This document shows, piece by piece, positions 323-35,654 of a DNA stretch of 36,518 nt (positions within the stretch are counted from its first letter, which is position 1; the number at the start of each line of letters is the position of its first letter). The position numbers and the translations under genes are program-made. The stretch comes from Octopus bimaculoides (lineage: Eukaryota): positions 40,969,214 to 41,005,731 of the forward strand of contig NC_069000.1 of the NCBI RefSeq assembly GCF_001194135.2, written 5' to 3'. The notes beneath the pieces are model-generated. The model ran no database searches. It was not told where the DNA came from and saw nothing but the letters and a program-made list of their open reading frames with translations.

Positions 323-341
323 CTGAAGTATGCTGCGACAG
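323..341 (+). CDS. Gene A microexon (19 nt), xEVCCD(S)
   Basis: cttctcttttag|CTGAAGTATGCTGCGACAG|gtaagt. Same length and phase as gene B microexon 33274-33292. Confidence 0.85.
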
Positions 342-517
342 GTAAGTAGTTTATCGATTACTTTTTATTTAAAAGAATTAACCACAATTAGCAAGTTGGT
401 TATATTTTGTCCTGAGCATTTAAAATGTGCAACTTATTTATAAATCCTTTCATACCTACCTACAAACATACATAAATACATACGAACACACATTCCCCCT
501 CAAATATGCATACGCAC

Positions 518-563
<46 letters not shown>

Positions 564-3391
564 TGTGTGTGTATGTTAGTGTGCGTGTTTGTGTGTGTAT
601 ATCTGTGTAGGCATACATATACAAATATATGCACAAACAACAAATAATTCGGACATAAGTGAGAACAAGAAAGAGACAAAATGACAGAACTACCTTGACA
701 GATGGATATTTTCTTGGGTTTACTTCGATCACAGATTGTGAATCTACAATTTATCATCACAACTTTATTTTTTAATATACATGCATATCACATTATATGT
801 TGATATATTCACATAAGAAATGAAATATGGGACTCCAGCTGTGTCTTCAGTTTTGGTGGCTTCTCATTTATAAATATCCATGAAAATTCTCTAAGTAAGG
901 CATAAAGAAAATCAATCGAAGTTACCGAAGAAAATGGACATATCGTGATCTAGAATCAACGCCCGCTCTATCTATTTATCCTTTCTTGCCCTCCTAAATT
1001 ATGGTAGCCAAAAGCGTATATAAATTGTATTATTATTGATATAAACTTTTTTGTATAAAATTAGCTGATAAAATTAGCTGATAAAATTAGCTCTTAAATA
1101 TTTCAAATTGTTCATTACATTCTCCTTTTGAAATTTCAGCTGTCTCGGTATTGCTACCAATGATCCACATGATGGACGTAATTGCTCTCCGTGTATGCCT
1201 TACTTTCGACCACTTCTCACAAATAATATCAGCTGTGAGGGTGGTAAGTCAAAAGTTCTTTCTTTTCATTTACAAAATGGTTTTAGACAAAATCACAACG
1301 AAGGTTGAGCATTGAATTAAATGCATCATAGTATTTAGATTCATTTATTTCAGTTCTAAGTTGAACTCCCATCTTTACCATGTAGGTCTTTGCATTTCAT
1401 CTGAAAGAAATTGACGAAATCAACACAACCGACACATGTACATGTAATCGATTATATTTCCATCTATAATCTTTCTAAAAAGTTTATATGACTAGTTTTA
1501 AATAATAGAGGACAGTCATAAAGGGATAATTTAGCTATCCACAAAACCTCGATCCGACCATACTCTACTCCATGTACAACCATATAGGTGCTTTAGATTT
1601 CATGCCATACTAAATGGTTAAATCTTCTATGAATAAACTCATGCAGAAGTTCAGTTCTTCAAGGGATTAATAAATAACTATCAGTATTCAAATTATCCCC
1701 TTCCATTTAAATCGACGTGCATCTCTGGCCTCACTTAACATTTTAAGTGATACGATGAGAAGAATATTACAGAGTTAATACCTAACATATGTCAATCATG
1801 CTATGTTTTACACTGTCAAAATCTAACACCAGACAAAAATTCCTGACACATGTGTAACAGGAATTCACCGTTTCGTTGCTCGTGGTGGTGTCAACTGAGA
1901 AGTAAAATTCTGTTTGAATTGTTTAGAATTTACCGCTGACCAGAGATCTAATAGCGAGGGAATCTGCTGTTTTTCTGGAAATTGACCTTGAACAGATGCA
2001 AAGACATACCTGTCTATATCGTTTGTTTTGTGCTGAAAACAATCCTTTGAGTTTCAAAGCAACCAGATCTTTCTTTAGGTATTTTAATCTGACCATAAAA
2101 GTCACAATGTTTAGATATCTATAACTTTCTGCAATGTTATTACCAGTTCGAATATTCTACAAACACTTTCTGACTTGTAAACAAGCCATTCACTGTGTTT
2201 CGTCATGGAGAAAATTTCTCACTGTAGACATATGGTGTAAATCAGCTCGCAGCACCACCTGTCCAGGCTGTGAGATGAAAGCATTTCGGAGTAGTTAACT
2301 TTTTTTCAGTCATAGAAACCGTACAGTGACGCTGCGAGCTGATAAGAAAGATAATCTCTTTTATGTTTTTCCAGTCAACATCCGTCGGCTGGAAGCGCAA
2401 ATCGAGGGCTCATCGTAATTAAATTACGGGCTAAGAGTGCTAAGCTATGATAAGTAGTAATACAATGTTATTACTGAATGTGATATTAGCTTAATCGAAC
2501 TGTTAATAACATTGTATTAATATATATCACTGCTTAGCGCTCTCACTCCGTAATACTATAAATTTCTATCAGAAATCATGGACAACCTACACTATAATGC
2601 AGAAATAATTTCTTAATTATGATATCTTTTCATTGTTTCAATTTATTTTATTTTATTCATGTTTTATCTTCTGTACAGGTATCAATCATGGTATAAATGA
2701 CGTCACCCATGTAATTGATGCTTCTTTTATGTTTCATGATACGCATTTAGAAACAAACTTAATGAACGCTGACGGTGAGTAATCCTTTTTCTCAGATTAC
2801 AAAGATCTACATATCTATCGAGTTATCTGCATATCTATCTATCATTTTCAAATGTATATGAATACGTGATGTAGGTGGAGTACATATTATTGTAAGCGGC
2901 AATAAAACAATTTAGTCAACGGGGATTTCATAGCCTCATTCAAAATATTACCTTTTTATATGACCTATCCAACCTTAGATTCACAATTCCTTCGAATGAT
3001 AAATTAAGACCTGATCAACAGACAGCCATTAATTTATCGAAGTCAGCATCTAATACTTGTTCTTTTTTGTGTTTTTTTTTGGGGGGGGGCGGAGGTCATT
3101 ACGTTAATATAATATATTGCAAAGCAAATACAAAAGCGAAAATATTTTTTAAAATTTCAGGGAAGTTTAATCTGAATTCAGGATTTCTTCCACAAGCAGG
3201 AAATAAATTTAAGGGAGGTAAGATACCCTTTGGCAGATAATTTCATTGATAAGACTGTTTTAAGTTACATAAAGTTTATTTAAATATATATAAAACAGAA
3301 CGTGAATCACCTTATAAACGTTATAGAAGTCTGTAAACATGCACGTACCTGTGTGAGTGTGTGTGTGCGTGTGTGTGTATGTGTGTGTGTA

Positions 3392-3429
<38 letters not shown>

Positions 3430-6400
3430 TGTGTGTGTGTGTGTGTGTGTGTGTAAATATTAGCACTTCCAACAACATAAATATTTCCCCATGCTAACAT
3501 GGATTTAAAACTAATAACCGGAAATAAGAATAAGACTAAATTGAAAAATATTAAATATGCGAATATTAAGAATCAAAGACAAAATATGAGAAATATTAGA
3601 AACAACGTACTACTTCGTTGTTTTAATCATTCTCGTACTATCGGGAGTAGGAATAATAAGATAAAAAAACAAACACCTTATATATCCAAAAATGGTCGGA
3701 GAGGTAGAGGTTATAATACATCTTCTAACAAGAACGAAACTATTTGGTTTATTGTTCCATTCGCTAAACAAATTAAAGGTAATTTGGTCGGTAATTTATA
3801 TAAACTTTTTTCCAAACATTTTACAAAATGATATTATTAACCCTAGGCTTTTTAGAATTGGTCATTCTGTATCTAATAATTTATACCAGATTATATCCTC
3901 GATCAACGAAAGAAAATTATATTGTTTTATAATCACTGTAAAGGTAGTAAACGCCATAGGATTAATACCAATCGAATAAACGTTAGCGAGGAAAGTATAA
4001 TTTGGACATTTAACGTACGAAGGGAAAACTACTCTAGTAAAATCTCACCCCAACCTTTTGAATGTAAATAAAACTACAAACAGTAAATATCTAATCTGTA
4101 ACGATAACAAACAGTAATAATATGAGTAATAAAGAAAATACTTTCCCTGATTGCAAGCTTAAAAGTGAATGCTTATTTAAGAATTTTTGTAAGATAATTT
4201 CTGAGAGTAAAAATTACATTTATATAGGAGCCACGCAGAATTATATTAAAAAAACGCATTTCTTACCATATTTACACCTTTATTAATAGAAACAGGTCTT
4301 CTTCTACTAGCCCTAATACATTTATTTGGGATTTAAAGGATAAGAAAAAAGTTTTTTCTGTGGAGTGGGAAATTATAAGCAAGACTACTGCTAATAAACC
4401 TGGGAACTCTTTCTGCTTTCTTTGTTTAGAAGAGCTGTATTTTATATTATTTTCTAGAAGACGTCTCGTAAATGCTAAGATAGAAATGTGCATGCATCAA
4501 AATGGATATTTAGGAACTATCATTAGGTTTATAGTAATTATTGATAATTGCTTATATATTAAAGATATTCATATATTTGAATAGATCAAAATTTCTGGTA
4601 TAATGCAATTTTTCGGGCTTCATATACTAAATAAGTATAAATACTAATTAGATATTATAAATATAAGTTAAATCTAATATAAGTGGCAGTATATATCTGA
4701 TTTACTGTAAGTTTGATTAAACATACTTTTCTGAAATATTTAGTTAAAATTCCTATAGTAACCTATAGTAAAATTCCTATAGTAACCTAAACTTTAGATA
4801 CAACATATCATCTTGAAGTAGTGGTAGCTTTGGTGTAATTGGTTATCGTATAGATTTTCGATGTGTAGTATCTGGTAATATGTAAGTTCTGCTTATGTTT
4901 ATGTAATAAGTATTGACCGTATATTTACACAAATAATAATTTATTGTCAATCTTCTTTGCTTAAATTGCTAATGCTATTGCTAATGGCATACACAACATC
5001 TCTTATCAATTATCTACTTCTATCTGATTAATGGAAGTTTCTTGTGAACACAAAGACGTATAAGAAACTCAGTTGACTGTAGTGATCTATTAAGACACAT
5101 TATTATGTACAGCTCGGTTTCGATTCTTGATTGTAGGTATTCCCTAGTACTTTGCAACTTATACTCACGTGAAATGTATTAACATCCCGTTTTTTACTCG
5201 CTTTGTCCTTAAAATTGATGTGACCTTGATTAGATGCCAGAGTCTGATAAAAAGATATTGGCTTAAAAGGAAGTAAGAAACATCGTCTTTCACTTTAAGT
5301 TATGCAAGTAAAATAATGGTAATATTTTGCTTTCATTCAAAGGTTACCAGTACTAAGATAAAATTCTGCAGGATGATAATTTCTGCATTTCAGTCGTCAT
5401 TGGCCTAATAAATAATGGTAATTAATATGCTAAATGTGATCCAGTTAGTTTTATCCATACATTTCTTTTCGCTAAAAAATTTAATTTTGTGTTTAATAAA
5501 GATACCTCATCTTTTTCTGTTTTCTAGTTGGAGATACTATCAGTGAAAACCCTTTACTGATGGCAATATATCATGTGTTTCTTCGTGAATACAATAAACT
5601 TGTCGATAAAATGATCGAATTTGGTTACGAAAACGCCTCGGAAGAAGCAAAGAAATTGCTGATTGGAATATTTCAACATATTACTTACAACGAATATTTA
5701 CCAATGTTACTCGGTGTCGACACTCCTCTTAAATCTAAGACTACTGGAACCCGCACTTACGATAACCAAAAGCTACCTATGGTTTCACATTCTTTCTCAC
5801 TTGCCTATGAATTAGTCGTGGCTTCGATGTTGAGAGAATCGGTACAAGTTGCTCCAAATACAAATGAAAATTTGATTGATATAATAAAAGACGCAACAAA
5901 AGTGGATGACGATACTGAAATGACAAATATTGTCAAAGGAATGCTGGAACAGGCTAGTTTGGAAATTGGGAAGTATGTCAGTTTCCATTCTACATTTAAT
6001 CTGCAGCAGTGTAGGTAGATTTTTTCCCGCACCGGGGTCTGTAAAATAAATCCGAATATGTATGTACTAGCTCTTGGACCTGGCGTTGCTCGTGTTTTCT
6101 GTGTTGAAGTTAACTCCACCTCTGACCTTGTACTGAAATCTTCTACGTTCCCTGTGCCAACTATTACCAATTAAGATGTTATATCTGGTTTGACAGGGAT
6201 TTTAATCGGTTAACGCTTTCGACATGCTCCTAGATACTGGACCGTCTGAAATCGTAGTCAAAGTTTTGGGTGTACCTCGACTCGTTGAAAATAATGCTTG
6301 TTTATTTCTTATTTCTTTACTGCTCACAAGGGGCCACACACAGAGAGGAGAAACAAGGACAGATATATGGATTAAGTCGATTATATCGACCTCAGTGCAT

Positions 6401-7183: not shown

Positions 7184-7741
7184 CAGACATCATTACACAT
7201 TTATGTATATAGATTTATGTATATGTGTGCATACACGTGAGTGTGTATGTCTGTCATTTATAAGTCACCGATTATCCGCATTATGCTTATAGAGTTGGTG
7301 GCTGTCTGGTAGGCTACTTAAATATTTTCTGGTATTTTGTTACGATATCCTTTTATTTTCTGATAAAATATGAAACAACAAATCACTGAACTCAATTTAA
7401 TCCTCAGCCTCTCCTCAGATTGCGTGTTAAAGTACCAATAGTAGGTATTATTATCATTATGGGGGCATAATATTTTCTCATAAATTCTTATATTTTTGGT
7501 ATTTTTATTTGCCTTATATTTTTCAGTAAAATACCCTGTGCTTTCCGAAACAATTGTAACTTTTCCGATGTAGTGGCAACTGTAACCCAAGATACACGTT
7601 TTTACGGAATACCTCCATACATCGTTTGGCTGGCAATCATAAACCCGCTTACAAATATGTCGTTTAAAGCATTCCCACACCATGATACTAACGGAAGACA
7701 ACTCTTAGAAACAATGTACATGTGAGTGAAAATCATATTAT

Positions 7742-7782: not shown

Positions 7783-10700
7783 CTCTAGGTTATTTAAAAT
7801 ATGTTTGTAACTTCTAAAGGCAAATGCACTTAACGTAGAGACAAAATTATTTCTTATGGTACAAAGCGTAAAAATGCCATATCTGCCTAGTATTTCATCC
7901 TAGCGGACTTCTGGCTCTTTTGCCTTCAGTAAAATATCAAAGAGCGATATCTCTGGGCAGATTCGACGAGTTTTTGATATGCGATCCTAACTGTGCATAG
8001 GATATGCTTTTGCTAGAAGAGACTTACGCTTATATCGAGTTCCAGCATTTTGATCGACTGCAAGAGCTCTAGCTGAGAACCACTCATGTCTAGTGGGGAT
8101 GTAGTAAAATGGTGTGATTTTATTTTATATGAATAGTATGCAACAACATTGTTTTCACCGAGCATCTTTAAACCAAGAGTCCACAAGAGTACACAAAGTG
8201 TTTGTGCCAATCTTATCTACGTTCTCTTAAAGTATGTTCATCTCTTTCTTTCCACGATGTAACTACAACAACCAAGATTTCGTGGTCCCTTAGTGCGATA
8301 TGTTTCCCTAACGCATTAGTTTATCGATCTAAGGTATTTCATGTAATCAAATAATATAAAAAGTCTTATTTATGGTTCACTTAATATCTACTTAAAAAGG
8401 ATTCTAAAAATATATGTATACTTTCATACAGTTAGAAGGTGTTGCACCACATCATTCTTCAAATATATTTGGAATATAAACTGTGATGATATATTAACAA
8501 TTCTAAAATTGCTGAAACCAAGAAGAGGTGAGCTTTGTCTTACGAAGAATTACGACATCCTATTATAGTCTTTTTCAAATATCTGATCTGTTGGATTCTC
8601 GCAGATAATTCAGTCGCTATTTACTGAAGAAGTTTTCAATACCAAATCGCTAAAATTGTTTATTCCTCACATAATAGTTTTGCCAAAATCTTGCAAAATG
8701 TTCATGCACAGTAAAAAGCAAACAAATAAACAAACAATACATCCAGTGTTTCACCAAAATTAAATCTGCATTAATAATAGCCACCTTCCTTAATTTTATA
8801 TATTTTACACACATAAACTAGAAAACATGACATAACAGTCTGTTTTTACATGTGAATACAGGAGTAAATAAGTTATGTCAGTGTATTGAAACTAGATATT
8901 CAATTCTTTGTTTATATCCAATCAAATTTCAATTACTAATAACTTCAATATTTTCTCTCTTTTTTTCTCTCTCTACTTTCTTTCTCCCTCTCCCCCTTTT
9001 TTGTCTCTCTCGCACTTTTTGTATATTGGATTTACATTTCCTTTCCGTTTCACGATAATTTTCTCCCTGGTATTTCCCCCTCATACACATAACTCATTCT
9101 TTGTTTTGGTCATAAAACACCTCCTCCTCTTTTCCATCATCTCTTTATTTCATTTTCCCTCCTTTTTCTCACTCTTCTCGCTTTGCTTTTACACTTCCAT
9201 CCGCTTTAAAATTCGTTGGAATTTCATAGTAATCGAGGTTAGGTATTGTATCAGGAATTCATAATTCCTTTCTTTTTAGTTCATTTCTCCACTTGCTCTT
9301 CCTTCACTTGCTCCTTCCGTTACTTCATCACAAACATTTTCCCCAGGTAAGATGTATTTTTTTTTATCGTAGTCAAACGACAAATTGGCAGTGTTCAAAT
9401 ATGTTACTATTTGTTAATAACATTATTGAATAAATGTTAACTCTTGATGTATTAACGATAGTGACTTCCTAAAAAACCAACCAACTCTTTGTGTATTTGT
9501 GTGTATGTGTGTTTCTAAGACATACATGCATGCATACATAATTCTCATTTATATACTTATTTATGTATTGCAGAAGTGTCTTCGACGTTGATTTTTTAAG
9601 TGGAATGTTTACTGAGAAAAAAGATCCTAACCTGAAACTCAGCCAAACATTAATGAGACAGTTCGAAGATCAATTTTCTACATTGAAAGAGGGTGACAGA
9701 TTTTATTATGAGAACGTCAATGAATTCCAGTCCAGTAAGCTACCAATTATTCATTATTATTGTTTGACTTTATTTAATTAACTAAAGTTACCTCAATACG
9801 ACATTGATCCAATTCATCGAAAATCATTCAACTACCCGCTCCATAAAAGTTGTTTTCCCGTCAATGAATTTGCCAACTGATACAATGCAGTGTGCGCCTT
9901 GTAACATTCTAAATGCCAGACACCCAACAGTGGCCTACGTTGAAGCATGAGTGCAAGCTCGGTCAAGATGAACTGTGGAAAGACGTGTCGCACGAAGAAT
10001 GCCCAAACTAGTTCACTCTTGCTTTCGTCATTGTCGTTGACATCATTGGAGTGTTTTAGATATTTCTGCGGATATCGAGGCGATGTATGCATTTACTACT
10101 TCTGCTCAGGTAGTCATTCATTCGAATATTATTCTTTCATTTTGTATGCAATATTTGTATTGTTTAATAATGTGAAATACTCCGTAGTTTTATTTTTTTT
10201 TCTTTGTAGTTCATTGTTCTATTATTTTTGCTAACCTTTATTTTACCCCCTTTCAGACCAGCTTGCAGAGATCAGAAAAGTGACGATGGCTCAGCTATTG
10301 TGTCGCAACGTAGTCAATCTAGATCAAGTAAAACAGTTTGCTTTTAATAAAACTTCGTGAGTATTTACTTCATCATGATAAACATTAATGTTTCTTTTGT
10401 TCTTTTTCTCTTACTCGCCACACTTTTATACTCTAAGATATTTTTGTACTAACGTCAGTTGTAATCCAATTTAGGTGTATCCTTTTTGTATCGGAAATTA
10501 CGTAATATTCAATTACTACAGTGCAATGAATTCAAGTGAAAAAAAGAATATATTGATGAAGGTCAGGATAAATCTTAATGTAGATGCATTTTCATGTACT
10601 TGTGTAATATATATATATTTTAATTACACATATACAAACAGAACAACACATTGATTTATGTTGTAGCAAATCTCTATTGAACAGATCTGTTAGTAAATTG

Positions 10701-13137: not shown

Positions 13138-13186
13138 TGTCGTTCACTCGAATTTGATGTTCTATGATCAATGTTTCTTTATGTCT

Positions 13187-13888
13187 NNNNNNNNNNNNNN
13201 NNNNNNNNNNNNNNNNNNNNNNNNNNNNNNNNNNNNNNNNNNNNNNNNNNNNNNNNNNNNNNNNNNNNNNNNNNNNNNNNNNNNNNNNNNNNNNNNNNNN
13301 NNNNNNNNNNNNNNNNNNNNNNNNNNNNNNNNNNNNNNNNNNNNNNNNNNNNNNNNNNNNNNNNNNNNNNNNNNNNNNNNNNNNNNNNNNNNNNNNNNNN
13401 NNNNNNNNNNNNNNNNNNNNNNNNNNNNNNNNNNNNNNNNNNNNNNNNNNNNNNNNNNNNNNNNNNNNNNNNNNNNNNNNNNNNNNNNNNNNNNNNNNNN
13501 NNNNNNNNNNNNNNNNNNNNNNNNNNNNNNNNNNNNNNNNNNNNNNNNNNNNNNNNNNNNNNNNNNNNNNNNNNNNNNNNNNNNNNNNNNNNNNNNNNNN
13601 NNNNNNNNNNNNNNNNNNNNNNNNNNNNNNNNNNNNNNNNNNNNNNNNNNNNNNNNNNNNNNNNNNNNNNNNNNNNNNNNNNNNNNNNNNNNNNNNNNNN
13701 NNNNNNNNNNNNNNNNNNNNNNNNNNNNNNNNNNNNNNNNNNNNNNNNNNNNNNNNNNNNNNNNNNNNNNNNNNNNNNNNNNNNNNNNNNNNNNNNNNNN
13801 NNNNNNNNNNNNNNNNNNNNNNNNNNNNNNNNNNNNNNNNNNNNNNNNNNNNNNNNNNNNNNNNNNNNNNNNNNNNNNNNNNNNNNNN
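13187..13888. other. Assembly gap (N run)
   Basis: N bases. Confidence 1.
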
Positions 13889-14287
13889 ACATACATAAAG
13901 TTTCATAAATATACACATGCGTTACGTGCATGCCTGTACGTGGTCATACAACTATACTGTTTTTATATGAATCTTTAATTATTTTTGCATGTTTTTCTCG
14001 ATAGGAAATCGTAATTTGATGATCCTAACATGGTGAAAAAAAAAAAAAAAAATTGGGAGCCTATCAGTATATATTTAAATTCTTGTCTTTTGATATTTCT
14101 CTTTCATTCTTCTCCATGTCGCAACGTGTCTTGTGACCATACCTTGAGACCAAACTAACACTCTGACAAATTCTGCACAAAGACAACAGAACAGATTTTG
14201 TAAGAATCAATTAATAATAGGATAAATAAATTTTCGTCTCAATGTATTGAGTGCTTTGTTGTGTTGCCGTTCCAAAGGAGACTAGAC

Positions 14288-14327
<40 letters not shown>

Positions 14328-15591: not shown

Positions 15592-15790
15592 TTTACTCTT
15601 TTACTCTTTTACTTGTTTCAGTCATTTGACTGCGGCCATGCTGTAGCACCACCTCTAGTCGAGTAAATCGACCCCAGGACTTATTCTTTGTAAGCCTAGT
15701 ACTTATTCTATCGGTCTCTTTTGCCGAACCGCTAAGTTACGGGAATGTAAACAGAACAGCATCGCATGTCAAGCGATGCTGGGGAACAAA
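15592..15790 (-). repeat. Octopus-type SINE (family 2), 3' portion
   Basis: GCCATGCT..AGCACC.CCT.TAGTCGA..AAATCGA.CC.AG..AAGCCTAGTACTTATT is shared with 20540-20893 and, in reverse, with 27405-27545. Confidence 0.75.
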
Positions 15791-15814
15791 CACAGACACA
15801 CAAACACAAACACA

Positions 15815-16564: not shown

Positions 16565-16589
16565 TATATATATATATATATATATATAT

Positions 16590-16636
<47 letters not shown>

Positions 16637-16750
16637 CATACATACATACATACATAAATATATATATATATATACATATACATACATACATATACATACA
16701 CACACACGCATACACATATATACATTTATACATATACACATATATATATA
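16565..16750. repeat. Compound (TA)n/(GATA)n/(CATA)n microsatellite
   Basis: Seen directly, adjacent to a gap. Confidence 0.95.
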
Positions 16751-16817
16751 TTCTATATACTATTTTAATTCTTTTCTATACTTTATAAATCAACATTATA
16801 TATAGAAAAACATTACA

Positions 16818-16882
<65 letters not shown>

Positions 16883-16909: not shown

Positions 16910-16930
16910 TTGCTAATCCTTGCATTGCTC

Positions 16931-22600: not shown

Positions 22601-23051
22601 TATATATATATATATANNNNNNNNNNNNNNNNNNNNNNNNNNNNNNNNNNNNNNNNNNNNNNNNNNNNNNNNNNNNNNNNNNNNNNNNNNNNNNNNNNNN
22701 NNNNNNNNNNNNNNNNNNNNNNNNNNNNNNNNNNNNNNNNNNNNNNNNNNNNNNNNNNNNNNNNNNNNNNNNNNNNNNNNNNNNNNNNNNNNNNNNNNNN
22801 NNNNNNNNNNNNNNNNNNNNNNNNNNNNNNNNNNNNNNNNNNNNNNNNNNNNNNNNNNNNNNNNNNNNNNNNNNNNNNNNNNNNNNNNNNNNNNNNNNNN
22901 NNNNNNNNNNNNNNNNNNNNNNNNNNNNNNNNNNNNNNNNNNNNNNNNNNNNNNNNNNNNNNNNNNNNNNNNNNNNNNNNNNNNNNNNNNNNNNNNNNNN
23001 NNNNNNNNNNNNNNNNNNNNNNNNNNNNNNNNNNNNNNNNNNNNNNNNNNN

Positions 23052-26000: not shown

Positions 26001-28044
26001 ATATAAGGGAAAAATCGTTCTGTCTTGACCTTCATAACTCCCGTTCCATTTAGAATATAAACATGTTAATTTCTTCTTTCATCAAGTTCTATAGTGATTT
26101 ATCGAAATGTTGTGGACAAATGGTGATGTTGATGAGTATCAGTTGCAAAAAAATAAATAAATAAATAAAATAACTACGATCAAAAATCGAACCTGGGCTA
26201 TACATAACAATTTATGTCTACAGGGATCACTGCAACGACTTGGCCTATATTGTGCTTCGTGTAGCTTTCAGAACCAACTGTGTTCTAATTCATTGATTTA
26301 GTAAAGACTAGATAATTGATAAGAGATGGTATAAACATACCATTAACAAGAGCATTATCAAGTTAATCAAAGAAAATTGGCTATAAATTGGAACTGAATC
26401 CCACTTTCGAGACGCCACTTTTCATTTAAAGACGAACAATATAAATGATTAAAGAACGAAATCACTGTTTTACGTAGAAGAATAGGCTCGTAGCCTGTTT
26501 TAATATTATGGGCAAACTGCGAACTAGCTACCTTCATGATCATCACCAAGGTCAGGAAATCAGCAGACGAACATACAGATGAAAGAAAAGTGGGTATTAG
26601 GATGCACCAAACAACTTTTGGTGAAAAAGGCTTTAATATTTGGAGTAGAAAAATATGGCTTCATTACAGAAAAGCGTTTTATTCAGTCATGGCTATAGAT
26701 TGCAAAAATATCTGCTGTTTTAGATACTGCCACAGAAAGTCTCACGAAGACCTTGTCCACATTCCTCACTCTTATAAATGAAACTGAAATGATTATGTGT
26801 GATGTTATAAATATTTCAATGAGAATATTTCAAGGCAATTGTATGTGCATCTATTTATTTTCTTGGCCTTATATCTACGATATCATTTTTGTTACGAAAA
26901 GCCAATGGCTATATAGTAGTGTAAGAGACATTGATATGATACGTAAGTTCTCTGTGAAAGATCTAAAAGTCTATGCCTGAAACTCTTACGATACTGAAAA
27001 CAGCCGCATATAAACATGTAATCTACTGGTATAGGAAGAGCGTTCAGCCGAAAGAAGGGTTTATATTTAACAACTGAACGTAGAAAATCTACTTTCCAAA
27101 CCCAAAATGCTTGCATCAGTTGTCTCTCTATCTCGCTTATTCTACGAAACAAGTATAGAAAATAACAAGATATCCTAGATATTGTTGAAAATATATCGTA
27201 TAAAGATACTGTGAAAACGTTAGAGTAACCCACACGCTACAGTAACATCAAATAAATATTCAAAATAATGAACAGAGATCAAGGTCAATCTTTGCCAAGC
27301 GACTTCACTCTGAATGCTTTAGCTTTGTTACTATGGCAATAGTCCGGATACTTATTGATCAGATTGCGTATATGTATATGTGAGTATGTCTGCATGCCTG
27401 TATATGTGTGTGTCCCTGCGTGATTATCTCCCACCATCGCTTCACAACCAGTGTTGGTGTGTTTGCGTCTCTGTAACCTAGCAGTTTTGCAAAGGAGCCC
27501 GATAGAATGCGTACCACACAAGCAAAACAACTACTAGGCTCAATCAGCTGGACTAAAATTTTTCCAGATGTTGCTCTTTTACTTGTTTTAGTTTAATGTC
27601 TGAAACAAGTAAAAGATAAAATACATACATACATACATACATACACGCACACACGCACACGCACACACACACGCACACACACACATATATAGACTTGACA
27701 ATGACAATAATCTAATAGTTAATAACCTACCTCCGGAAAATTTGACGCCTGTTTTTGAAAGAAATCCTGTAGTGAGGTCAAACTTGCCTGAAATTTGAAA
27801 GTAGAAAAGTAAGTATGAATACCAAGTTGGGTAAAATAATTGGACACCTTTCATATATTATTTCCATAGTGCGTAATGAGAGTGAAGAAGTCTTGGATCC
27901 AGTCACCCTTGAGTATATTCATGTGGAAAACTTCAAATCAATAGTGCAAGCTTTTGAATTGACCGTCTGTTATATTGATATTACAACAATCACACCTATC
28001 TCCATTGATATCCGTGTACATATACGCTTGGTAATAAGAAATTT

Positions 28045-28113: not shown

Positions 28114-31100
28114 AAGGTAGATATCTAGATAGATAGATACATCGATTTATTTACATGGGCCTTTGTAATCAATGGAAAATGCTGTTACTTACCGTTAGTT
28201 AAAGTGCCGCTAAAATCAGTTGAAGAATACAATAAAGAAAGATCAAGTGGGGCAGTAACATCATTTTTGCCTTGATTATTAGCTTTTTAAAAGATAGAAA
28301 AGATGGAAAAATAAGAAAATGTGACAATAAAATAATAACATTACGAAATTATTTCCGTATAATGAAAGAGTAAGTTTCCATTAACTTTTGACAGTTATCG
28401 ATAGAAATTTAAAATATTGTGAATTTTATAATGAGGTTAAATTTCTAAAGTTACTTGGATGTTCAAAGTACTGTTTCCAGCACAAAACAAGCCATATGCA
28501 TTTATAGTTGGGGTCATTTATCAAAAGAATATCAACTTTGCACACCGATAGATAACTGATTCTGGTTAATTATGAACAACTGTTATCGCATTTAGGTAGA
28601 AAGATTTGTTCTTATTTATCTATTTATCTATTCCAGAAGAACTAAACCTTTGCATGAGCCCACGTGTGAGCTCATAGCAAAGTTTTCTATGGCAAGTTTT
28701 AATGAATTTAATTCAATGTTCAGCTATCTTTGTCATTACATTTGAAATAATTTTATAAATAAAAGAAAGGAAGCTTTTAAATTATTACCCGTGCACTTGA
28801 GATCATATTCTAGAATTGGTTTTTTGTATGGCATACACTTAGCGCAGCCATTTGTAACACGTTCATCAGTTGCCGCATTGGTATCAATACCTAGACAACT
28901 GAAATATTCAAAGAAAACGTTATAAAAAGTTTGAAATATTTAAGAATAATTTTTTTAGCGGAATGTGTTTTGGATATTGCTAGACCAGAACTTCGATCTG
29001 AAAGTCTAGTTGCATTTACTTTTGAAAGCATGCTTTTGATCAGTCTAATGTAAGTAAAATGAGAGACAGCAATTAACCATATTGAACAAAACTAATGTAA
29101 TTCTCTAAAAAAAGTGTTTTTATTGACACAAATAGAAAAGAAATCAATATGGAAAGATGAAACAGTAAAAACTGTATAACAGAAGATATACAATAAAATG
29201 TAAGCAGCCAGTGTGTCAAATCTACTTCGTGACTTCGATTCCTAACTGTAAACTTACACTTCAGTTACGTTGCCGTGTCGGATTTCTTCTCCTCAACAAT
29301 AAATATAAGGTTCATGCTATGTTACAAAAAGCCAATATTTGAACCAAAGCCAAAAAATCTCTGTTGTTCTTTTAGTGTTTATTGAATGGCAGATGTATAT
29401 GATTATATTTTCACTTAGCACAGATATAGTATACGTGAGTAATAAACAGAAAATTTTGGCGCTCATTAAGCAAAATCAGTATTAATAAAATAGCTCATGA
29501 TTACTTTTGATTCTAAATGCTCATATGTTTCTTTAATAAAATCTGAAGAGTCTGAATTTATTTACAGTGAAGATAACCGAATAATTAGAAAAATATCACG
29601 TCTCCACTTCATTTTCTTGCCTGCATATAACGGTATTCAAATAGTTTATAAGCGATCTGAAGAGATATTTAATGTATCAATTGGATTATGTATTTTCGTG
29701 CTGCTTTACCATTTCTTTCATATTTTCTAGAATGCGCAATCTTTAGCGGTAGCTACATTTTTCTCAACAAACCTGAAATCTCACCTCTTAATCTGGTAAT
29801 GCTTACCACATATGAAAATGGAAACTCATTTTAACAACTTACAGAGCACTTTCTGTAGGATTGGAATTATAATTGATTGCAAAATGATATGTCATTCATT
29901 GGTCACAGACAAATATATCTGATTCTGTAAGAAATTGGACATAAAACGTAAATGGGTAACACTAAATAATTGTAAGACATTTAACTACACTATTTACTTT
30001 CCTATGCATTCCTACCGCCATTTTTACAATAACATCAAATAAAGAACTCCACGTTCAACACACACAATATATTCCCGTTACGTTAACAGAGTATTAAAAA
30101 AATTACAAAGGCAAAACCAGAAATCTTTTCTTAGGAATTGACAAATACCTTGAGAGTAGAACTTGATTGACTGGACTAAAAATCTCATGTATAAATAGCT
30201 AAGCAATTATTGTCTCTTGCTCAATAATCGTGGATAAAAGACCATATGCTCGCGGTGAAGCAAATGAAAAATTTGGATAAAACAAGTCGCAGACTATAAA
30301 TTAAAAATACAAAAATCTTGTGTAATTATGTTGGATAAAGATTAGGACGGTGAGGTTTCAAAGCATAAAGCATTTCTGCAAACATATAAAAAAAAGGTTT
30401 GGGATGTTACCCACTACAATTTGTAACTTAAAATCTAGACTTATTTATGGATGTATTTGGAGTGCTGATTCCAAAACTGGTATTGAGTTTTCTCTACAAC
30501 CTCTTACTAAATAATTAGCAGTTATTTTGATAAAAATATAATAATATTTTGTGCCATAGAAATAAACTGCATTCTGATATATGTTATTTTTCAGTTCAAG
30601 ATCTTAAGTTGAACTACATTAACATTTATAGTATTGGGTTGGTGCATAATTATTGCGGCTTTTTTTTTCAACAAATTGTATTCAACAAAAACAATAACAG
30701 CATGTAACAAAAACATCTTTAAATGATTAATCCGGAGCATATTCACCACCTACTTCAATTACTGCTTCCCATTTGTTTGGCAGACGGTTAGACCGTCATT
30801 TAAATATGTTTTTGTTAAATGTTGTTATTGTTTTTGTTGAAGAAAATTTATTGAAATAAAGCCGCAATAATTATGCACCGACCCAATAATTGTAACAAAG
30901 CAATAAAGATAGAATATACAACGATCACTCTAAAATATATTCTTTCTAAAGTTTCTTATAAGTTTATAGGTCAGTTTTCCCGAAGTATCCTTCAATAACC
31001 TATCACCATGTGTGTATCTCGTTTTCCCTGTTTTCCATTGCTTTTCCTTGCTCTTTGATTAAATCATCTGTTTAAGGGACTGTGGAGATAATAAACAATG

Positions 31101-32958
31101 ATATTCGTATTACAAACTCGCTTATTAAAATGGATCATTCCATCTACTAATTCAAAGTTGTTTATTGTTGGCTGCCAAGAAAATTCTCGGAAAATATAAA
31201 ACAAACGAAATTCATGTCCAAGACGGAGTGTTGTCCACCGATCATTTATAAACACTCTTAACATGGTACTATCCTAAATTTCTGCTTGGAGTTCTTTTCT
31301 CAAGCTCAGTCTGGGAATTTACTTTATGAATAATCAAAGCAGACATGTTCTTTATTCTTAACTTTTACAAGACTTTAAACAGCCCAAATTTGATATGTAT
31401 TGGTAGCTCGGTGGCATTTTCTCTTTCTTGACTAAGGTTTCGTTGGTAACATTTTCCTCCACAGCTACCCTATTTAATTTCAAATGATCACTGGTTTCCT
31501 ACTTAATGCTGTCCTCAAGAATATAAAAGCACAATGATTGTGGTTGCCACTTAGCTAAATTATGCGAAAGTTTACTATTTTTTGTCTTGCATAAAAGCCT
31601 TATTGATAATCTTAATACATCGTCTTTTTCAAGGGAAGAACAATTATGTTACTCGTCATTTATGCATGAATTGAGCAACATTTCTTGCCGATCTGTGTAA
31701 AGGATACATTTCTAAAGTCTGCTTTAATATACTTTGAAAAAAGTTGTAATTCAAGCATTATCCGAGGATGTTATATTTCGTTACAAAACAGTGTTGTCAT
31801 CTTAAGAAACGAAGACTGGTACATATTTTTTTCTTTGATCCGATATCACATAAGAATGTAGTTAAATATTTTCATCGAAGCTCAGGATTAGAAAATTCCC
31901 TTTAGTAGTTCAGATCAGTGAGGATATTGATTAGTTCAAATTTGTCAAAACACTCAGAAATTAATGAAGCTCCTTGAAAGTCAGTCATTTTCCATAGTTC
32001 TATTACATTCAATAGATATGACTGATTCAGCAGTACCACCATTTAAGAGTCCTAGCAAGAACCAAAAGATGAAACAGGCGCTGATTCTAGGTCAAAATAT
32101 ATCCTCTTGCTTCGATTATTTCAATAGGTGTCACTGATACCTTAACTAGAGAAATTCCATAGATTTATATTGAAAATGGTATAGATCGAGAAGTCCCTAA
32201 ATTTGAAAATGCGCATAGGAATTTCTAATTTCAGTAAACAGATGAATACATCATCATATAATGGAGTATATATAATGAAAATAGACCTGTTAATAGTAGA
32301 TGTGAATCCGTGCACACTCCACCATTCCTAACAATTAGCAAGACGATCTGTCTTGCTTATACTGTCGTCATCGTGCATTAATGAACGTGTATTTTGTGTA
32401 AATTTAAGGTTAGAAATATACATACACAAGTATAAACACACAAACACAGACACAAATGTGTGTGTATGTGTGTGTGTGTTTGCGTGTGTGTGTGCGCGCG
32501 TATGTGTTTTAAATATTTTTTAAAGTCAAAATAATGCATTATGAAAATAGATATTACAAGTCAATATTTGAATATCTCAGCGTTAAGACCCCTTCTTCAG
32601 GAAATTTACGAAGAAAAGTTGTTGATAGCCGGTGCCTCTGCTTTGCAGATAGAAATATTGAAATACCAAATAGTAGTACTAACCATCGATCTATATTATT
32701 GATAAGTCAGTACATGTTTTGGGCTTTAAAAAATTTATTCAAAACATCTATATATATATATATATATATATNNNNNNNNNNNNNNNNNNNNNNNNNNNNN
32801 NNNNNNNNNNNNNNNNNNNNNNNNNNNNNNNNNNNNNNNNNNNNNNNNNNNNNNNNNNNNNNNNNNNNNNNNNNNNNNNNNNNNNNNNNNNNNNNNNNNN
32901 NNNNNNNNNNNNNNNNNNNNNNNNNNNNNNNNNNNNNNNNNNNNNNNNNNNNNNNNNN

Positions 32959-33021: not shown

Positions 33022-34544
33022 TACACATACATACACCACCCACACACACACATATATATGTGTGTATCTGCATGTGTGGGTGTTTGTGTGTATAATATGT
33101 ATATATTATGCATGTATGTAGGTAAGTACGTGGGTATTTTGAGCATGAAAAGATTGATGAATAAGATGCACATTTTGAGGTTTTGAATTGTTAGAACGAA
33201 ATATATTTTTTTGATCTTATTCTACTCAATTGATTACTAAATATGAAAAGGAAAAAAAGAATATGTTAATTACTTTCCGCAGCACTCTTCATCTGAAAAA
33301 GAAGAGAAGAAATTATTAACACTTCAAAATTAGTTTTGCATTAGTTTTATTAATATTTCTAGGATAAAAGGAAAGAGCTTAAATCCGTACTAAAATGTAA
33401 TGACCTAGTTTATAATTTTCAAGTGCTACTATAGATTACAGTGTTTATTGTTCTTTCCCGTGTTTAGTATTTCCAAATTGATGAACTGGGCATTTCTCAT
33501 TTTAAATCTCACGACCATCGCTACTGCATAGTAAATTCGTGACACAAATCATCACCTTATCAGTTGTTTGGAAGCATATTCACTTAACTATCCGGTATTT
33601 CAGCTGTTTCTTTCTATTATCGAAATATTAGAAAAAGCTTTGAATTGAGTGACAGAAACACACTTTTGTTATTTCTTAAACTTAAACTATGATAAGAATA
33701 GAAACGCAATATTATTATGAAATAAAACTCATCTCATAAATCATATTAATGAAGTGAATGAGATGAAATAAAATTTCAAATTGATTGTAACATATAAAGC
33801 CAGATGAGGATTGTCTACAATCTTTTGAAACTACTCTCAATGTACTAAAATCAAGAGGAATAAGATGCAATATCATTTTATAAAAGAATGACAAGCAAAT
33901 GAGAAATACTAGGATCTCACCAATTATAAGCGAGAGTTTCCCATAAACTCTACCATAAAAAGCGAGAGTTTCCCATATGACGGGTTAGAAGAATGTTAAA
34001 AATACGTGCAGTATTCTTGAGCGGAATATTATTTTAGGGAATGTTCTAGTATATCAGTTTGCTTAGTTAAACACATCAGATTTGTCTTAGAATCATTTGA
34101 TAAATAAATATCAGTTTCTTAGATAATTACAATATGTTCCAGATGTATACGGGAAGACAATAGATTAACGTTGAGTTCACGCCTTTTTCAAACGCATTTG
34201 TCATGCAAGTGAATATCAACAACTGAAAATTGAAACTGGGTCGTAGAATAGGTTTCACGGAAGTATATCCCTCTCTTAAATATTGTTTTATTAAAACTGA
34301 TCTAACACTTTTTCTAGCAGGTGTAGAAGTAATGATTCAAAACTAAGAACAAGTGTCTAACTATTTACATGAAAATAGTAATTATCATACTATGTCAATA
34401 TGAAAATAATATTTCTTTGTTAGGAAAGCTAGTACTGCAAGAAAATTACTGATTAATAATTACATCAGTGTTGACCAATACAAGAGTACATGCATACACG
34501 TATATATACAGAAATATGAAATATATACATATACATATACAAAT

Positions 34545-34579
<35 letters not shown>

Positions 34580-35654
34580 NNNNNNNNNNNNNNNNNNNNN
34601 NNNNNNNNNNNNNNNNNNNNNNNNNNNNNNNNNNNNNNNNNNNNNNNNNNNNNNNNNNNNNNNNNNNNNNNNNNNNNNNNNNNNNNNNNNNNNNNNNNNN
34701 NNNNNNNNNNNNNNNNNNNNNNNNNNNNNNNNNNNNNNNNNNNNNNNNNNNNNNNNNNNNNNNNNNNNNNNNNNNNNNNNNNNNNNNNNNNNNNNNNNNN
34801 NNNNNNNNNNNNNNNNNNNNNNNNNNNNNNNNNNNNNNNNNNNNNNNNNNNNNNNNNNNNNNNNNNNNNNNNNNNNNNNNNNNNNNNNNNNNNNNNNNNN
34901 NNNNNNNNNNNNNNNNNNNNNNNNNNNNNNNNNNNNNNNNNNNNNNNNNNNNNNNNNNNNNNNNNNNNNNNNNNNNNNNNNNNNNNNNNNNNNNNNNNNN
35001 NNNNNNNNNNNNNNNNNNNNNNNNNNNNNNNNNNNNNNNNNNNNNNNNNNNNNNNNNNNNNNNNNNNNNNNNNNNNNNNNNNNNNNNNNNNNNNNNNNNN
35101 NNNNNNNNNNNNNNNNNNNNNNNNNNNNNNNNNNNNNNNNNNNNNNNNNNNNNNNNNNNNNNNNNNNNNNNNNNNNNNNNNNNNNNNNNNNNNNNNNNNN
35201 NNNNNNNNNNNNNNNNNNNNNNNNNNNNNNNNNNNNNNNNNNNNNNNNNNNNNNNNNNNNNNNNNNNNNNNNNNNNNNNNGTGTGTGTGTGTGTGTCTGT
35301 GTGTCTGTGTGTCTGTGTATGTGTGTGTGCAATGAGAGAGAGAGAGAGACAGAAAGGAGGAAGCTGGTTAAAACGAATTGAAGAAAGGAAATAAGGAAGG
35401 AAGAAAGACAAACAGAAAATCGAATAGGGAAGAAAGAAGTTAAAAAAAAAAGGATGATATTTTGCGATGCTTACCTGTAGTTCCTCTGCTAGTGCGAAAC
35501 ATATCAAACTTAAGGAGTTTTCCGAAAAGTGCAAAAAGGTGTGTTTTATCAGATAGTGTGCCATCGTGACAAGGGAACACGTCAGTGCTTACTTTCCTAG
35601 GTAAAGGTAATTTGACTCCGTAAAAACTCATGTATGGAACGTCCCCGGAACCAC
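16931..35654 (-). CDS. Gene B: animal heme peroxidase-family protein (5'-partial), predicted catalytically inactive, paralogue of gene A. Exons 35654-35475, 33292-33274, 28898-28789, 28282-28193, 27787-27731, 25801-25378, 24940-24746, 22409-22249, 18551-18452, 17273-16931
   Basis: Manual splicing gives one open frame (1679 nt) with GT-AG introns. Exons of 19, 57, 195, 161 and 100 nt equal the gene A lengths. Landmarks include LPLPRKVS, EECC, CMPY, HVFLREHNK, FQHITYNEYLP and SDRFYYE. Confidence 0.92.
18452..18551 (-). CDS. Gene B exon, DQLAEIKKTSMALLLCRNIDNLDKVKEKAFELAS
   Basis: tttcag| ... TC|gtgagt, 100 nt. Homologous to gene A 10257-10356 and not in the ORF track. Confidence 0.92.
19300..19449 (-). 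repeat. SINE-like repeat family 1, internally deleted copy
   Basis: Same core as 6300-6527 and ends in CGCCGCC. Confidence 0.75.
19604..19654. repeat. (AAT)n microsatellite
   Basis: Seen directly. Confidence 0.95.
20225..20344 (-). repeat. SINE-like repeat family 1 fragment
   Basis: CATCGACCCCAGTGCATAACTGGTACTTATTTAATCGA core. Confidence 0.75.
20540..20893 (-). repeat. SINE family 2, near full length with degenerate tRNA-like head
   Basis: The minus strand starts GCGCAGCGTGGCTGTGTGGTAA..GGCACCTCGGGTAAGTGTCTTC. The body matches 15592-15790. Confidence 0.75.
21030..21409 (-). repeat. tRNA-derived SINE (family 3)
   Basis: The minus-strand head GTGGAGGCGCAATGACCCAGTGGTTAGGGCAG..GGTTTCGATTCCCAGACC has A-box and B-box-like motifs, followed by about 300 nt of non-tRNA body. 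Confidence 0.75.
21543..21712. other. Assembly gap (N run)
   Basis: N bases. Confidence 1.
21713..21875 (+). repeat. SINE-like repeat family 1 copy (gap-truncated), opposite orientation to 19300 and 20225
   Basis: Reverse complement of the family 1 core: ACCAGTTATGCATTGGGGTCGATGTAATCGACTTAA. Confidence 0.78.
22249..22409 (-). CDS. Gene B exon, TVYDMDFLSGMFTE...SDRFYYEHTGVFLA
   Basis: ttacag| ... G|gtaagt, 161 nt. Lies within ORF 22238..22588. Confidence 0.92.
22617..23051. other. Assembly gap (N run)
   Basis: N bases. Confidence 1.
23610..24070 (-). mobile_element. Decayed Penelope-like reverse transcriptase core fragment
   Basis: The minus strand reads STPTRFRLTEL.., MGMFPNLSILFIGYVATQIF, RSYTDVI, PPKLEFT, DKLTTV and LPYS. 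These are collinear with PLE RT motifs (L.RLAELVL, MGPSYA.LF.GYVE.QIF, RYIDD, HP.L.FT, SIPYSQ). Confidence 0.65.
24746..24940 (-). CDS. Gene B exon, RKIPCNFRDNCKYSDIVSVLTQDTRYLAIPPY...
   Basis: ttccag| ... AA|gtgagt, 195 nt. Overlaps ORF 24742..24957. Confidence 0.92.
25378..25801 (-). CDS. Gene B large exon (proximal helix region)
   Basis: ttgtag| ... AG|gtaaat, 424 nt. Overlaps ORF 25374..25772. 47 of the first 63 residues are identical to gene A (counted by hand). Confidence 0.93.
27405..27545 (+). repeat. SINE family 2 fragment, opposite orientation to 20540-20893
   Basis: CCACCATCGCTT.ACAACC.GTGTTGGTGTGTTT.CGTC..CGTAAC.TAGC.GTT..GCAAA.GAG.CCGATAGAAT..GTAC is the reverse complement of the family 2 body. 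Confidence 0.7.
27731..27787 (-). CDS. Gene B exon, GKFDLTTGFLSKTGVKFSGG
   Basis: atttcag| ... G|gtaggt, 57 nt. Lies within ORF 27588..27854. Confidence 0.88.
28046..28112. repeat. (AGAT)n microsatellite
   Basis: Seen directly. Confidence 0.95.
28193..28282 (-). CDS. Gene B exon, ANNQGKNDVTAPLDLSLLYSSTDFSGTLTN (Ca2+ loop)
   Basis: aaaag| ... G|gtaagt, 90 nt. Homologous to gene A 2679-2774. Confidence 0.87.
28789..28898 (-). CDS. Gene B exon, CLGIDTNAATDERVTNGCAKCMPYKKPILEYDLKCT
   Basis: tttcag| ... G|gtaata, 110 nt. Homologous to gene A 1140-1243. Confidence 0.9.
30632..30888. mobile_element. Mariner-derived MITE with about 95-nt inverted arms and TA ends
   Basis: TATTGGGTTGGTGCATAATTATTGCGGCTTT ... 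AAAGCCGCAATAATTATGCACCGACCCAATA, resembling the Hsmar1/MADE1 TIR. The spacer encodes NRLPNKWEAVIEVGGEY on the minus strand, like a mariner transposase C-terminus. Confidence 0.92.
32772..32958. other. Assembly gap (N run)
   Basis: N bases. Confidence 1.
33274..33292 (-). CDS. Gene B microexon (19 nt), DEECCG(N)
   Basis: ttctcttctttttcag|ATGAAGAGTGCTGCGGAAA|gtaatt. Its phase joins 35475 to 28898 in frame. Confidence 0.85.
34580..35280. other. Assembly gap (N run)
   Basis: N bases. Confidence 1.
35475..35654 (-). CDS. Gene B exon with distal-helix region GSGDVPYMSFYGVKLPLPRKVSTDVFPCHDGTLSDKTHLFALFGKLLKFDMFRTSRGTT
   Basis: ccttttag| ... G|gtaagc, 180 nt. Overlaps ORF 35440..35631 and matches LPxPRxVS...WGQFLDHD of the family. 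Confidence 0.88.

Follow-up and report, generated by a model that had tools for sequence, protein, structure and literature searches.

A tail-to-tail pair of octopod peroxidase paralogues with a dismantled haem site and a probable non-catalytic extracellular role

Two animal-peroxidase paralogues of Octopus bimaculoides lie tail to tail in a single stretch of 36,518 nucleotides (the window), an AT-rich piece of DNA (34% GC) with six N gaps at ~40.98-41.01 Mb of chromosome CM046620.1 (GCA_001194135.2). Copy 1 is read on the plus strand and copy 2 on the minus strand, and the two proteins are 52% identical to each other. The reading that we consider probable is that they are octopod-specific, tandemly clustered, secreted pseudo-peroxidases, in which the haem site has been lost and the peroxidase scaffold kept for non-catalytic extracellular binding.

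Haem site, fold and clade

Residues of the haem site were mapped through phmmer alignments to lactoperoxidase (LPO) and myeloperoxidase (MPO) and through a 22-sequence MAFFT alignment with five canonical peroxidases, the codons being checked in the window; MPO numbering is used throughout. On the proximal side, the ligand His336 is replaced by Ala in both copies (5821-5823 in copy 1, 25529-25527 in copy 2), Arg333 by Leu (5812-5814 and 25538-25536) and Arg424 by Asp (7591-7593 and 24876-24874), while Asn421 has become Val in copy 1 (7582-7584) and Leu in copy 2 (24885-24883). Both alignment methods thus uphold the changes of His to Ala, Arg333 to Leu and Arg424 to Asp that a preliminary description of this DNA had proposed from alignment by hand. 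That description had singled out an aligned proximal His as the observation that would speak against it; no His occurs in the whole proximal helix segment of either copy, and therefore re-alignment cannot supply a ligand. On the distal side, the Arg239 column of the GDxRxxE motif holds Thr in copy 1 (GDTISE, 5536-5538) and Ala in copy 2 (SDAINE, 25793-25791), with no Arg anywhere in the motif of either copy. The distal helix GQxxDHD reads GKLLKFD in copy 2, so that Gln91 is replaced by Lys (35520-35518), Asp94 by Lys (35511-35509) and the distal His95 by Phe (35508-35506). The copy 1 orthologues of O. sinensis and O. vulgaris read GKLLMFD in this helix, with the same Phe and Lys, and Met in place of Asp94. 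These replacements suggest that neither protein would bind haem or act as a peroxidase.

The peroxidase fold, on the other hand, appears to have been retained. Single exons of both copies match the Pfam An_peroxidase profile (PF03098) at E = 1e-8 to 1e-14, and full-length orthologues reach 233-294 bits, with positions 2-530 of the 530 in the profile covered. An AlphaFold2 (AF2) model of XP_014782529.1 (copy 2), built on a 68-sequence alignment and thus a predicted rather than an experimental structure, has a mean predicted local distance difference test (pLDDT) score of 93.2 and a predicted template-modelling score (pTM) of 0.91. The best Foldseek matches of this model are lactoperoxidase and myeloperoxidase, with template-modelling (TM) scores of 0.73-0.74, a root-mean-square deviation (rmsd) of ~3.5 Å and 19-22% identity. 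Profile matches and model together show an animal-haem-peroxidase fold that is predicted to be intact in the pair, at an identity to any canonical peroxidase of only ~22-28%. Signal peptides are present in the full-length orthologues, signal-peptide exons lie upstream of both O. bimaculoides genes, and the products of copy 1 and copy 2 are presumably secreted.

The relatives of the pair form a sharply bounded group. Among 5.8 billion clustered proteins, searches returned 12-14 close relatives at E < 1e-97 before the matches dropped to 1e-24 (from ~344 to ~104 bits), and all of these close relatives come from O. bimaculoides, O. sinensis, O. vulgaris and Argonauta hians. An exhaustive HMMER scan with a single exon ('exon b') as the query gave 19 matches below 1e-10 among 1.84 billion representatives, and in the sequence searches no squid protein fell inside the octopod clade. 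In a bootstrapped neighbour-joining (NJ) distance tree, this clade is monophyletic with 100% support and sits on its own long branch. Within it, copy 2 groups with P0222/P0223 (99%), and copy 1 groups with its O. sinensis orthologue (100%) and with three Argonauta hians proteins (74%). Basal in the clade, at 97% and 94%, is an intermediate lineage made up of P0078/XP_036366591/P0224 from O. sinensis, P0221 from O. bimaculoides, and P0079 and P0080, the genes of which lie upstream of the window on the same chromosome.

Among the proteins of the clade, XP_036366593.1 is a copy 1 orthologue and XP_029647656.2 an intermediate.

The intermediate lineage retains part of the haem site. Here, the distal His, Arg239 and Glu242 are present, Arg333, Asn421 and Arg424 are already gone, and the proximal column holds His in O. 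sinensis and Tyr in O. bimaculoides. According to the MAFFT table, Arg333, Asn421 and Arg424 are lost in all members of the clade, with Leu at position 333 and Asp at position 424 throughout; the haem-less state is common to Octopus and Argonauta, and open reading frames (ORFs) are intact in four species. Because the same replacements span an octopod-only clade, the comparison supports a loss of the haem site that would have been complete before both the duplication into copies 1 and 2 and the split of Octopus from Argonauta. This agrees with the preliminary description, which had placed the loss before the duplication, and extends it by the three Argonauta proteins and by the P0078/P0221 intermediate. 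The divergence of Octopus and Argonauta is put by clock estimates on the order of 10^8 years. Parsimony over the NJ tree further argues that the haem site was taken apart in at least two steps. In the first, on the stem of the octopod clade, Arg333, Asn421 and Arg424 would have been lost, and with them the proximal network and the propionate anchors; in the second, after the P0078/P0221 lineage had split off and before the duplication, the distal His, Gln and Arg and the proximal His would have followed. A dead peroxidase family with living intermediates in the same cluster thus allows the order in which a haem site was dismantled to be read from extant genes.

Selection and competing explanations

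The two copies have evolved in very different ways. Between O. bimaculoides and O. sinensis, copy 1 (466 codons, tail excluded) has a non-synonymous rate (dN) of 0.038-0.041, a synonymous rate (dS) of 0.096-0.114 and a ratio of the two (omega) of 0.34-0.41, with a bootstrap 95% confidence interval (CI) of 0.23-0.59 and a binomial p = 4e-5 against neutrality. Its exons are 94.9% identical between these species, as compared to 91.0% for the alignable intron, and the orthologues of O. sinensis and O. vulgaris differ at 2 of 568 residues. Copy 1 is under purifying selection. The positional orthologues of copy 2 are P0223 in O. vulgaris (625 residues) and P0222 in O. sinensis, an assignment based on a neighbour conserved in tail-to-tail orientation, on collinearity of the spacer and on introns that can be aligned end to end. 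Over 555 codons, copy 2 and its O. vulgaris orthologue share 59.5% amino-acid identity, with dN 0.28, dS 0.19-0.21 and omega 1.33-1.55 (bootstrap CI 1.02-1.82), and mismatches amount to 7.2% in introns and 22.3% in exons. Between the sister species O. sinensis and O. vulgaris, the copy 2 lineage shows 44.5 non-synonymous differences (Nd) and 2.5 synonymous differences (Sd), which gives omega ~4.9 (p = 0.005); the synonymous proportion (pS) of 0.65% equals the intron divergence of 0.74% over 15.8 kb, and exons have changed at 3.7 times the intron rate (Fisher p = 1.6e-11). The case for positive selection on copy 2 is built on this sister-species pair and on the contrast between exons and introns.

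Change in copy 2 is not spread evenly. All 17 of 17 Cys are conserved though 40% of residues have changed, and the helical core (codons ~121-210) has omega ~0.5-0.6, as compared to 2-3 reached across codons ~181-300. The data indicate that diversifying selection acts on the copy 2 lineage within the limits of a constrained scaffold. Identity between O. bimaculoides and O. sinensis/O. vulgaris is 91% for copy 1, 77% for the intermediate lineage, 76% for the P0011 lineage and 59.5% for copy 2; the family as a whole is fast-evolving, with copy 1 the conserved exception. Between the paralogues themselves, dS is near saturation (0.9-1.4) and omega is 0.28-0.41. That both copies stayed under selection, as the preliminary description had it, is therefore correct in so far as both are selected, but copy 2 is diversifying rather than under purifying selection, and the tail of copy 1 is truncated.

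Could the pair simply be ordinary pseudogenes, two dead peroxidase copies that drift neutrally? The catalytic residues are gone, the omega of copy 2 is near or above 1, copy 1 has had its C-terminal tail deleted, and the NCBI model of copy 1 is only poor and fused, all as expected of decaying genes. However, frames are open across all visible exons, splice sites are canonical and matched in phase, and the omega of copy 1 (0.35) is significantly below 1. In copy 2, exons have changed three times faster than introns, which neutral decay cannot give. Neutral simulation predicts ~13 stop codons in copy 2 where none is seen (P ~2e-6), and the intron rate predicts ~13 indels, ~10 of them frameshifting, where three are seen, all of them in frame. 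Add to this the Nd/Sd of 44.5/2.5 between sister species and a haem-less state that is common to Argonauta, with ORFs intact in four species, and the pseudogene explanation is largely refuted for the family and seems to us very unlikely for the pair. A different concern is that the fast rate of copy 2 is spurious, produced by a wrong assignment of orthology or by gene conversion between members of the cluster. A tandem cluster of similar paralogues makes conversion possible, and the dS of copy 2 (~0.2) is about twice that of copy 1 (~0.1). Against this, the orthologue is a positional one, with a collinear spacer and copy 2 introns that align almost end to end at 93% identity, and the grouping of copy 2 with P0222/P0223 has 99% tree support; conversion, moreover, would carry introns and synonymous sites along, whereas the excess is found only in exons and at non-synonymous sites (44.5 vs 2.5). 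We give an artefact little chance.

Several observations weigh against the reading of a lost haem site and a non-catalytic binding role. Glu242 is kept in both copies (5545-5547 in copy 1, 25784-25782 in copy 2), as are, by sequence, the Thr, Asp and Ser of the calcium loop (V-T-x-x-x-D-x-S; Thr168, Asp172 and Ser174); Asp96 is kept as well (35505-35503 in copy 2, the distal exon of copy 1 lying outside the window), and a Tyr precedes the Ala of the proximal helix by four residues. The earlier claim that every visible catalytic residue is replaced was in this respect too broad, holding for His336, Arg333, Arg424, Asn421, Arg239 and the distal residues of copy 2 but not for Glu242, Asp96 and the calcium loop. 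In addition, the lack of haem binding and peroxidase action is deduced purely from sequence, the grouping of copy 1 with Argonauta has only 74% support on the distance tree, and the lower bound of the copy 2 omega against O. vulgaris is barely above 1. O. bimaculoides copy 1, which is without its tail and has its 5′ part out of view, could be starting to decay in this species, and no usable expression or proteomic evidence for either copy was found in the literature searched. The kept residues also bear on the explanation that the proteins are still enzymes, which would have an unconventional mode of binding to haem or to some other cofactor and would retain redox or other catalysis. In its favour, the fold is fully preserved at high model confidence, Glu242, which belongs to the pair of residues that form ester links to haem, is kept together with Asp96 and the calcium site, and the basal P0078 lineage retains the distal His and Arg and, in some species, the proximal His. 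Yet the proximal ligand is Ala in a helix without His, the pair of propionate-binding Arg residues has become Leu and Asp, the latter placing a negative charge where a propionate would sit, and none of Asn421, Gln91, Asp94, the distal His and the catalytic Arg has been retained. Within the P0078 lineage itself, the proximal column varies, O. sinensis having His and O. bimaculoides Tyr, and superfamily members without a proximal His, such as the DUOX domain, show no haem and no activity (PMC4420034, PMC8956913). Continued catalysis thus strikes us as very improbable.

With the secreted pseudo-peroxidase reading preferred, the history of the scaffold after the loss of haem may be sketched as follows. 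The fold would have been kept, together with its structural calcium-site residues and its disulfide framework, for an extracellular binding role, with copy 1 as the conserved member. In copy 2, the surface would have been remodelled by positive selection while the cysteines and the helical core stayed fixed, a pattern typical of molecular co-evolution, be it with the targets of saliva or venom, in gamete and egg-coat recognition, or in interaction with pathogens. The rapid evolution of copy 2, as read from its codons, points more towards a co-evolving binding role than towards a structural or matrix role. More tentatively, and with less than even confidence, it is hypothesized that the family serves as a haem-free secreted recognition scaffold, with the copy 2 lineage engaged in an arms race or in sexual co-evolution (as a salivary/venom, egg-coat/sperm-interacting or pathogen-binding protein). 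If true, this would be the first case of a peroxidase fold used as a diversifying binding module, in which the former haem cavity or its surroundings would form the variable interface. A dN/dS of ~5 between sister species places the copy 2 lineage among the gene classes usually tied to venom, fertilisation and immunity.

Exon models and the C-terminal module

Exon models were built from a protein-level comparison of the two window halves, in which conserved islands are collinear on opposite strands, and then from a guide protein and DNA collinearity. Copy 1 has nine visible exons and an open frame of 479 codons with a stop at 13135-13137, and copy 2 has 10 exons and an open frame of 558 codons with a stop at 16931-16933; XP_014782529.1 ('peroxidase mlt-7') is an exact substring of the copy 2 model. 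Every exon junction in both copies is of the AG...GT form, and intron phases are identical pair by pair. The models bear out the two paralogues with open frames, canonical splice sites and matching phases of the preliminary description, the end-points of which coincide exactly with the first bases of exons (323, the copy 1 mini-exon, and 35654, the copy 2 distal-helix exon). The exons of copy 1, all on the plus strand, are as follows.

323-341, plus strand: 19-nucleotide (nt) mini-exon (..EVCCD..), the first visible, with AG/GTAAGT boundaries; matches copy 2 33292-33274 and O. sinensis L002 10741-10759
1140-1243, plus strand: exon with CLGIATNDP...CMPYFRP...; pairs with copy 2 28898-28789 in the same phases
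2679-2774, plus strand: calcium-binding-loop exon (VTHVIDASF; Thr/Asp/Ser kept)
3161-3217, plus strand: 57-nt exon (GKFNLNSGFLPQAGNKFKG), homologous to an exon of the NCBI copy 2 model and of the O. sinensis orthologue P0005
5528-5972, plus strand: core exon (GDTISENP; proximal helix YELVVASML); Pfam An_peroxidase E = 3.5e-14
7527-7721, plus strand: exon with DVVATVTQDTRF (Asn421/Arg424 columns)
9574-9734, plus strand: exon with ..DVDFLSG...EGDRFYYEN..; Pfam An_peroxidase E = 8.8e-10
10257-10356, plus strand: exon with QLAEIRKVTMAQLLCRN...
12873-13137, plus strand: last exon, Cys-rich C-terminal module; stop 13135-13137, deletion junction after 13095

Those of copy 2, in the order of transcription, are the following.

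35475-35654, minus strand: distal-helix exon LFALFGKLLKFDMF
33274-33292, minus strand: 19-nt mini-exon (..DEECCG..)
28789-28898, minus strand: exon with CLGIDTNAATDE...CMPYKKP..
28193-28282, minus strand: calcium-loop exon (VTAPLDLSLLY)
27731-27787, minus strand: 57-nt exon (GKFDLTTGFLSKTGVKFSG), present in XP_014782529.1
25378-25801, minus strand: core exon (SDAINENP; YELVLASML); Pfam E = 3.6e-14
24746-24940, minus strand: exon with DIVSVLTQDTRY (Asn421/Arg424 columns)
22249-22409, minus strand: exon with ..DMDFLSG...NSDRFYYEH..; Pfam E = 1.1e-8
18452-18551, minus strand: exon with QLAEIKKTSMALLLCRN...
16931-17273, minus strand: last exon, Cys-rich module and intact helical tail; stop 16931-16933, AF2 pLDDT 86.5

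No N falls in any exon of either copy, and the gaps at 21543-21712, 22617-23051, 32772-32958 and 34580-35280 all lie within copy 2 introns. The gap-free orthologous loci of O. vulgaris (L004) and O. sinensis (L002) show the same exon series, with exon lengths of 180, 19, 110, 93, 57, 421, 195, 161, 100 and 337 nt at the orthologous locus and 180, 19, 110, 90, 57, 424, 195, 161, 100 and 343 nt for copy 2 in the window, from which it follows that no coding exon is concealed in the internal gaps. The 57-nt exon (3161-3217, 27787-27731) was also considered as a repeat, its frame running on into the intron, yet it is an exon in the NCBI copy 2 model and the idea was rejected.

Both genes are incomplete at the 5′ end. 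The window starts directly after a 2.5-kb assembly gap, inside which the distal-helix exon of copy 1 is expected, with the signal-peptide exon of copy 1 further upstream, beyond that gap (L006 51291-51338). The window ends directly before a 1-kb gap (after 36518), and the signal-peptide exon of copy 2 lies ~5 kb past it; a 149-nt second exon of copy 2, not found in the O. bimaculoides sequence beyond the window, probably lies in the gap, and its absence would explain why the NCBI copy 2 model begins at an internal Met. The NCBI model that covers copy 1 (LOC106877958 / XP_014782522.2, L006 1001-68580) is a 1074-residue fusion of an upstream paralogue and copy 1, which skips the exon at 1140-1243, reads the mini-exon in another frame and adds intron-derived segments (~10677-11166). 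The separate signal-peptide exon of copy 1 shows that the upstream paralogue and copy 1 are two genes. A comparable fused model is present in O. vulgaris (P0007, 875 aa). O. bimaculoides copy 2 contains zero N-X-S/T glycosylation sequons in 558 residues, as against 7 in the O. vulgaris orthologue and 6-7 in the copy 1 lineage.

The last exon of each gene (12873-13095 on the plus strand, 17273-16931 on the minus strand) encodes a C-terminal module in which six Cys and one Trp are invariant; the module also has a PF motif, and three helices come after these features. The C-terminal ~110 residues have no Pfam match even at E = 10, and a domain-only AF2 model (pLDDT 86.5) has no match in the PDB below E = 1. 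A thrombospondin type-1 repeat (TSR) was considered on account of the WSxW...C...R.C pattern of some members and found unsupported, there being no Pfam match; the TSR-containing PDB matches, with probabilities of only 0.12-0.21 at E > 1, amount to no more than a hint. The module may represent a small domain not described before, packed against the peroxidase fold. Copy 2, like the other full-length members of the clade, has a helical tail of ~40 residues, which copy 1 has lost. Relative to O. sinensis, copy 1 carries a single deletion of ~0.68 kb (L002 39564-40240) with its junction after 13095 (...ITPDGIE). Removed by it were the 123 nt that encode the tail, the old stop and a 3′ flank rich in (TA)n/(TG)n, and what is now read as the final 13 codons (13096-13134) and the present stop was formerly 3′ flank. 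The distance from the deletion to an assembly gap is 90 nt; if the deletion is real, copy 1 of O. bimaculoides is a truncated variant. Scattered out-of-frame indels in the copy 1 tail were at one point considered, and a longer alignment shows one clean deletion instead.

Between the genes lies the tail-to-tail intergenic spacer, the order and collinearity of which are conserved in O. sinensis and O. vulgaris. A dispersed repeat resembling a short interspersed element (SINE), with a conserved core of ~110 nt that contains GTCGATTACATCGACCCCAGTGCATAACTGGTACTTATTTAATCGACCCCGAAAGGATGAAAGGCAAAG, occurs in both orientations in introns and spacer, and has no match by ARAGORN (tRNA) or Rfam. All assembly gaps, at the edges of the window as well as the six inside it, are flanked by (TA)n, (CA)n or similar microsatellites.

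13138-16930: intergenic spacer, with gaps at 13187-13888 and 15815-16564; collinear with O. sinensis L002 40287-48233
6200-6480, plus strand: SINE-like repeat copy
20100-20380, plus strand: SINE-like repeat copy
21735-21915, minus strand: SINE-like repeat copy
35860-36010, minus strand: SINE-like repeat copy
19690-19790, minus strand: SINE-like repeat copy

Comparison with known systems

A literature search found no paper on the octopod haem-less clade, and several reports of cephalopod peroxidases were examined for a connection to it. The quantitative PCR primers for an O. maya oviducal-gland 'chorion peroxidase' have no match to the window, a 'chorion peroxidase-like' peptide of the O. vulgaris ink proteome (QWCGLSFPR) belongs to a canonical peroxidase, and a paper on the Argonauta eggcase matrix mentions peroxidases only in general terms. 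The posterior salivary (venom) gland of Paroctopus digueti over-expresses the transcript of a 'Peroxidase-like protein' of 614 residues (PMC12607849); its length and its name, which is that of P0222, fit the clade, but canonical cephalopod peroxidases share the name and membership is ambiguous. A lineage-specific tandem expansion of peroxidases in a cephalopod is known from the light organ of Euprymna scolopes (PMC6386654). It is a separate event, later than the split of squid and octopus, and an active halide peroxidase is among its genes.

The names that databases attach to the octopus genes come from other members of the superfamily. C. elegans MLT-7, insect chorion peroxidase and myeloperoxidase share PF03098 and the fold with the pair, but they are haem enzymes with activity in matrix cross-linking or in the production of hypohalous acid, and the octopus pair is without the catalytic and haem-binding residues for this. 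The NCBI names reflect similarity, not orthology, and labels such as 'peroxidase mlt-7', 'chorion peroxidase', 'myeloperoxidase' and 'heme peroxidase 2' steer readers of omics data to oxidative-defence or cross-linking enzymes that the sequences do not support. Peroxinectins (family 3), of which there are many paralogues per genome (PMC4420034), are alike in being a secreted invertebrate peroxidase fold with a second, non-catalytic function in cell adhesion. Their classical members, however, have an active haem site and carry KGD as an integrin motif; the haem residues are missing from copies 1 and 2, and no KGD or RGD is found in them or in their orthologues. The first domain of the salmon-louse protein LsPxtl-1 is likewise without the classical distal and proximal haem motifs (PMC10579435), and superfamily clades that have lost essential residues are noted in the cited review.

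Haem-less peroxidase domains are already established as a concept, through DUOX and PXDNL. The preliminary description had invoked cephalopod S-crystallins as a precedent, an analogy that is acceptable, though these two precedents within the same superfamily are nearer. The peroxidase-homology domain of DUOX (family 7) has no proximal His, no haem and no peroxidase activity (PMC4420034, PMC8956913), and cryo-electron microscopy structures of DUOX show no haem while cation sites are visible (PMC8956913). The likeness extends to the fold (Foldseek TM ~0.67 to DUOX1), to the absent proximal His and to a non-catalytic protein-protein or structural use. The DUOX domain, in contrast, is the N-terminal ectodomain of a membrane NADPH oxidase (NOX), ancient and widespread, whereas the octopus proteins stand alone, each with a signal peptide of its own and a Cys-rich module at the C terminus, and are octopod-only, tandemly expanded and partly fast-evolving. 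The clade proteins, of 550-640 residues with a signal peptide and PF03098 as the sole Pfam match, have no transmembrane or NOX module. PXDNL is a duplicate of an active animal peroxidase that has been retained without peroxidase activity (PMC8533639), but it has the multidomain architecture of peroxidasin (LRR, Ig, vWC), belongs to another lineage and is not known to diversify rapidly; in the octopus proteins, the Pfam scan returns An_peroxidase only, and no LRR, Ig or vWC domain. Set beside these systems, what is new in the octopod clade is the stand-alone secreted architecture, the octopod-restricted tandem expansion with surviving intermediates, and the strong positive selection on one member, which make the family a concrete and testable candidate for an octopod-specific molecular innovation.

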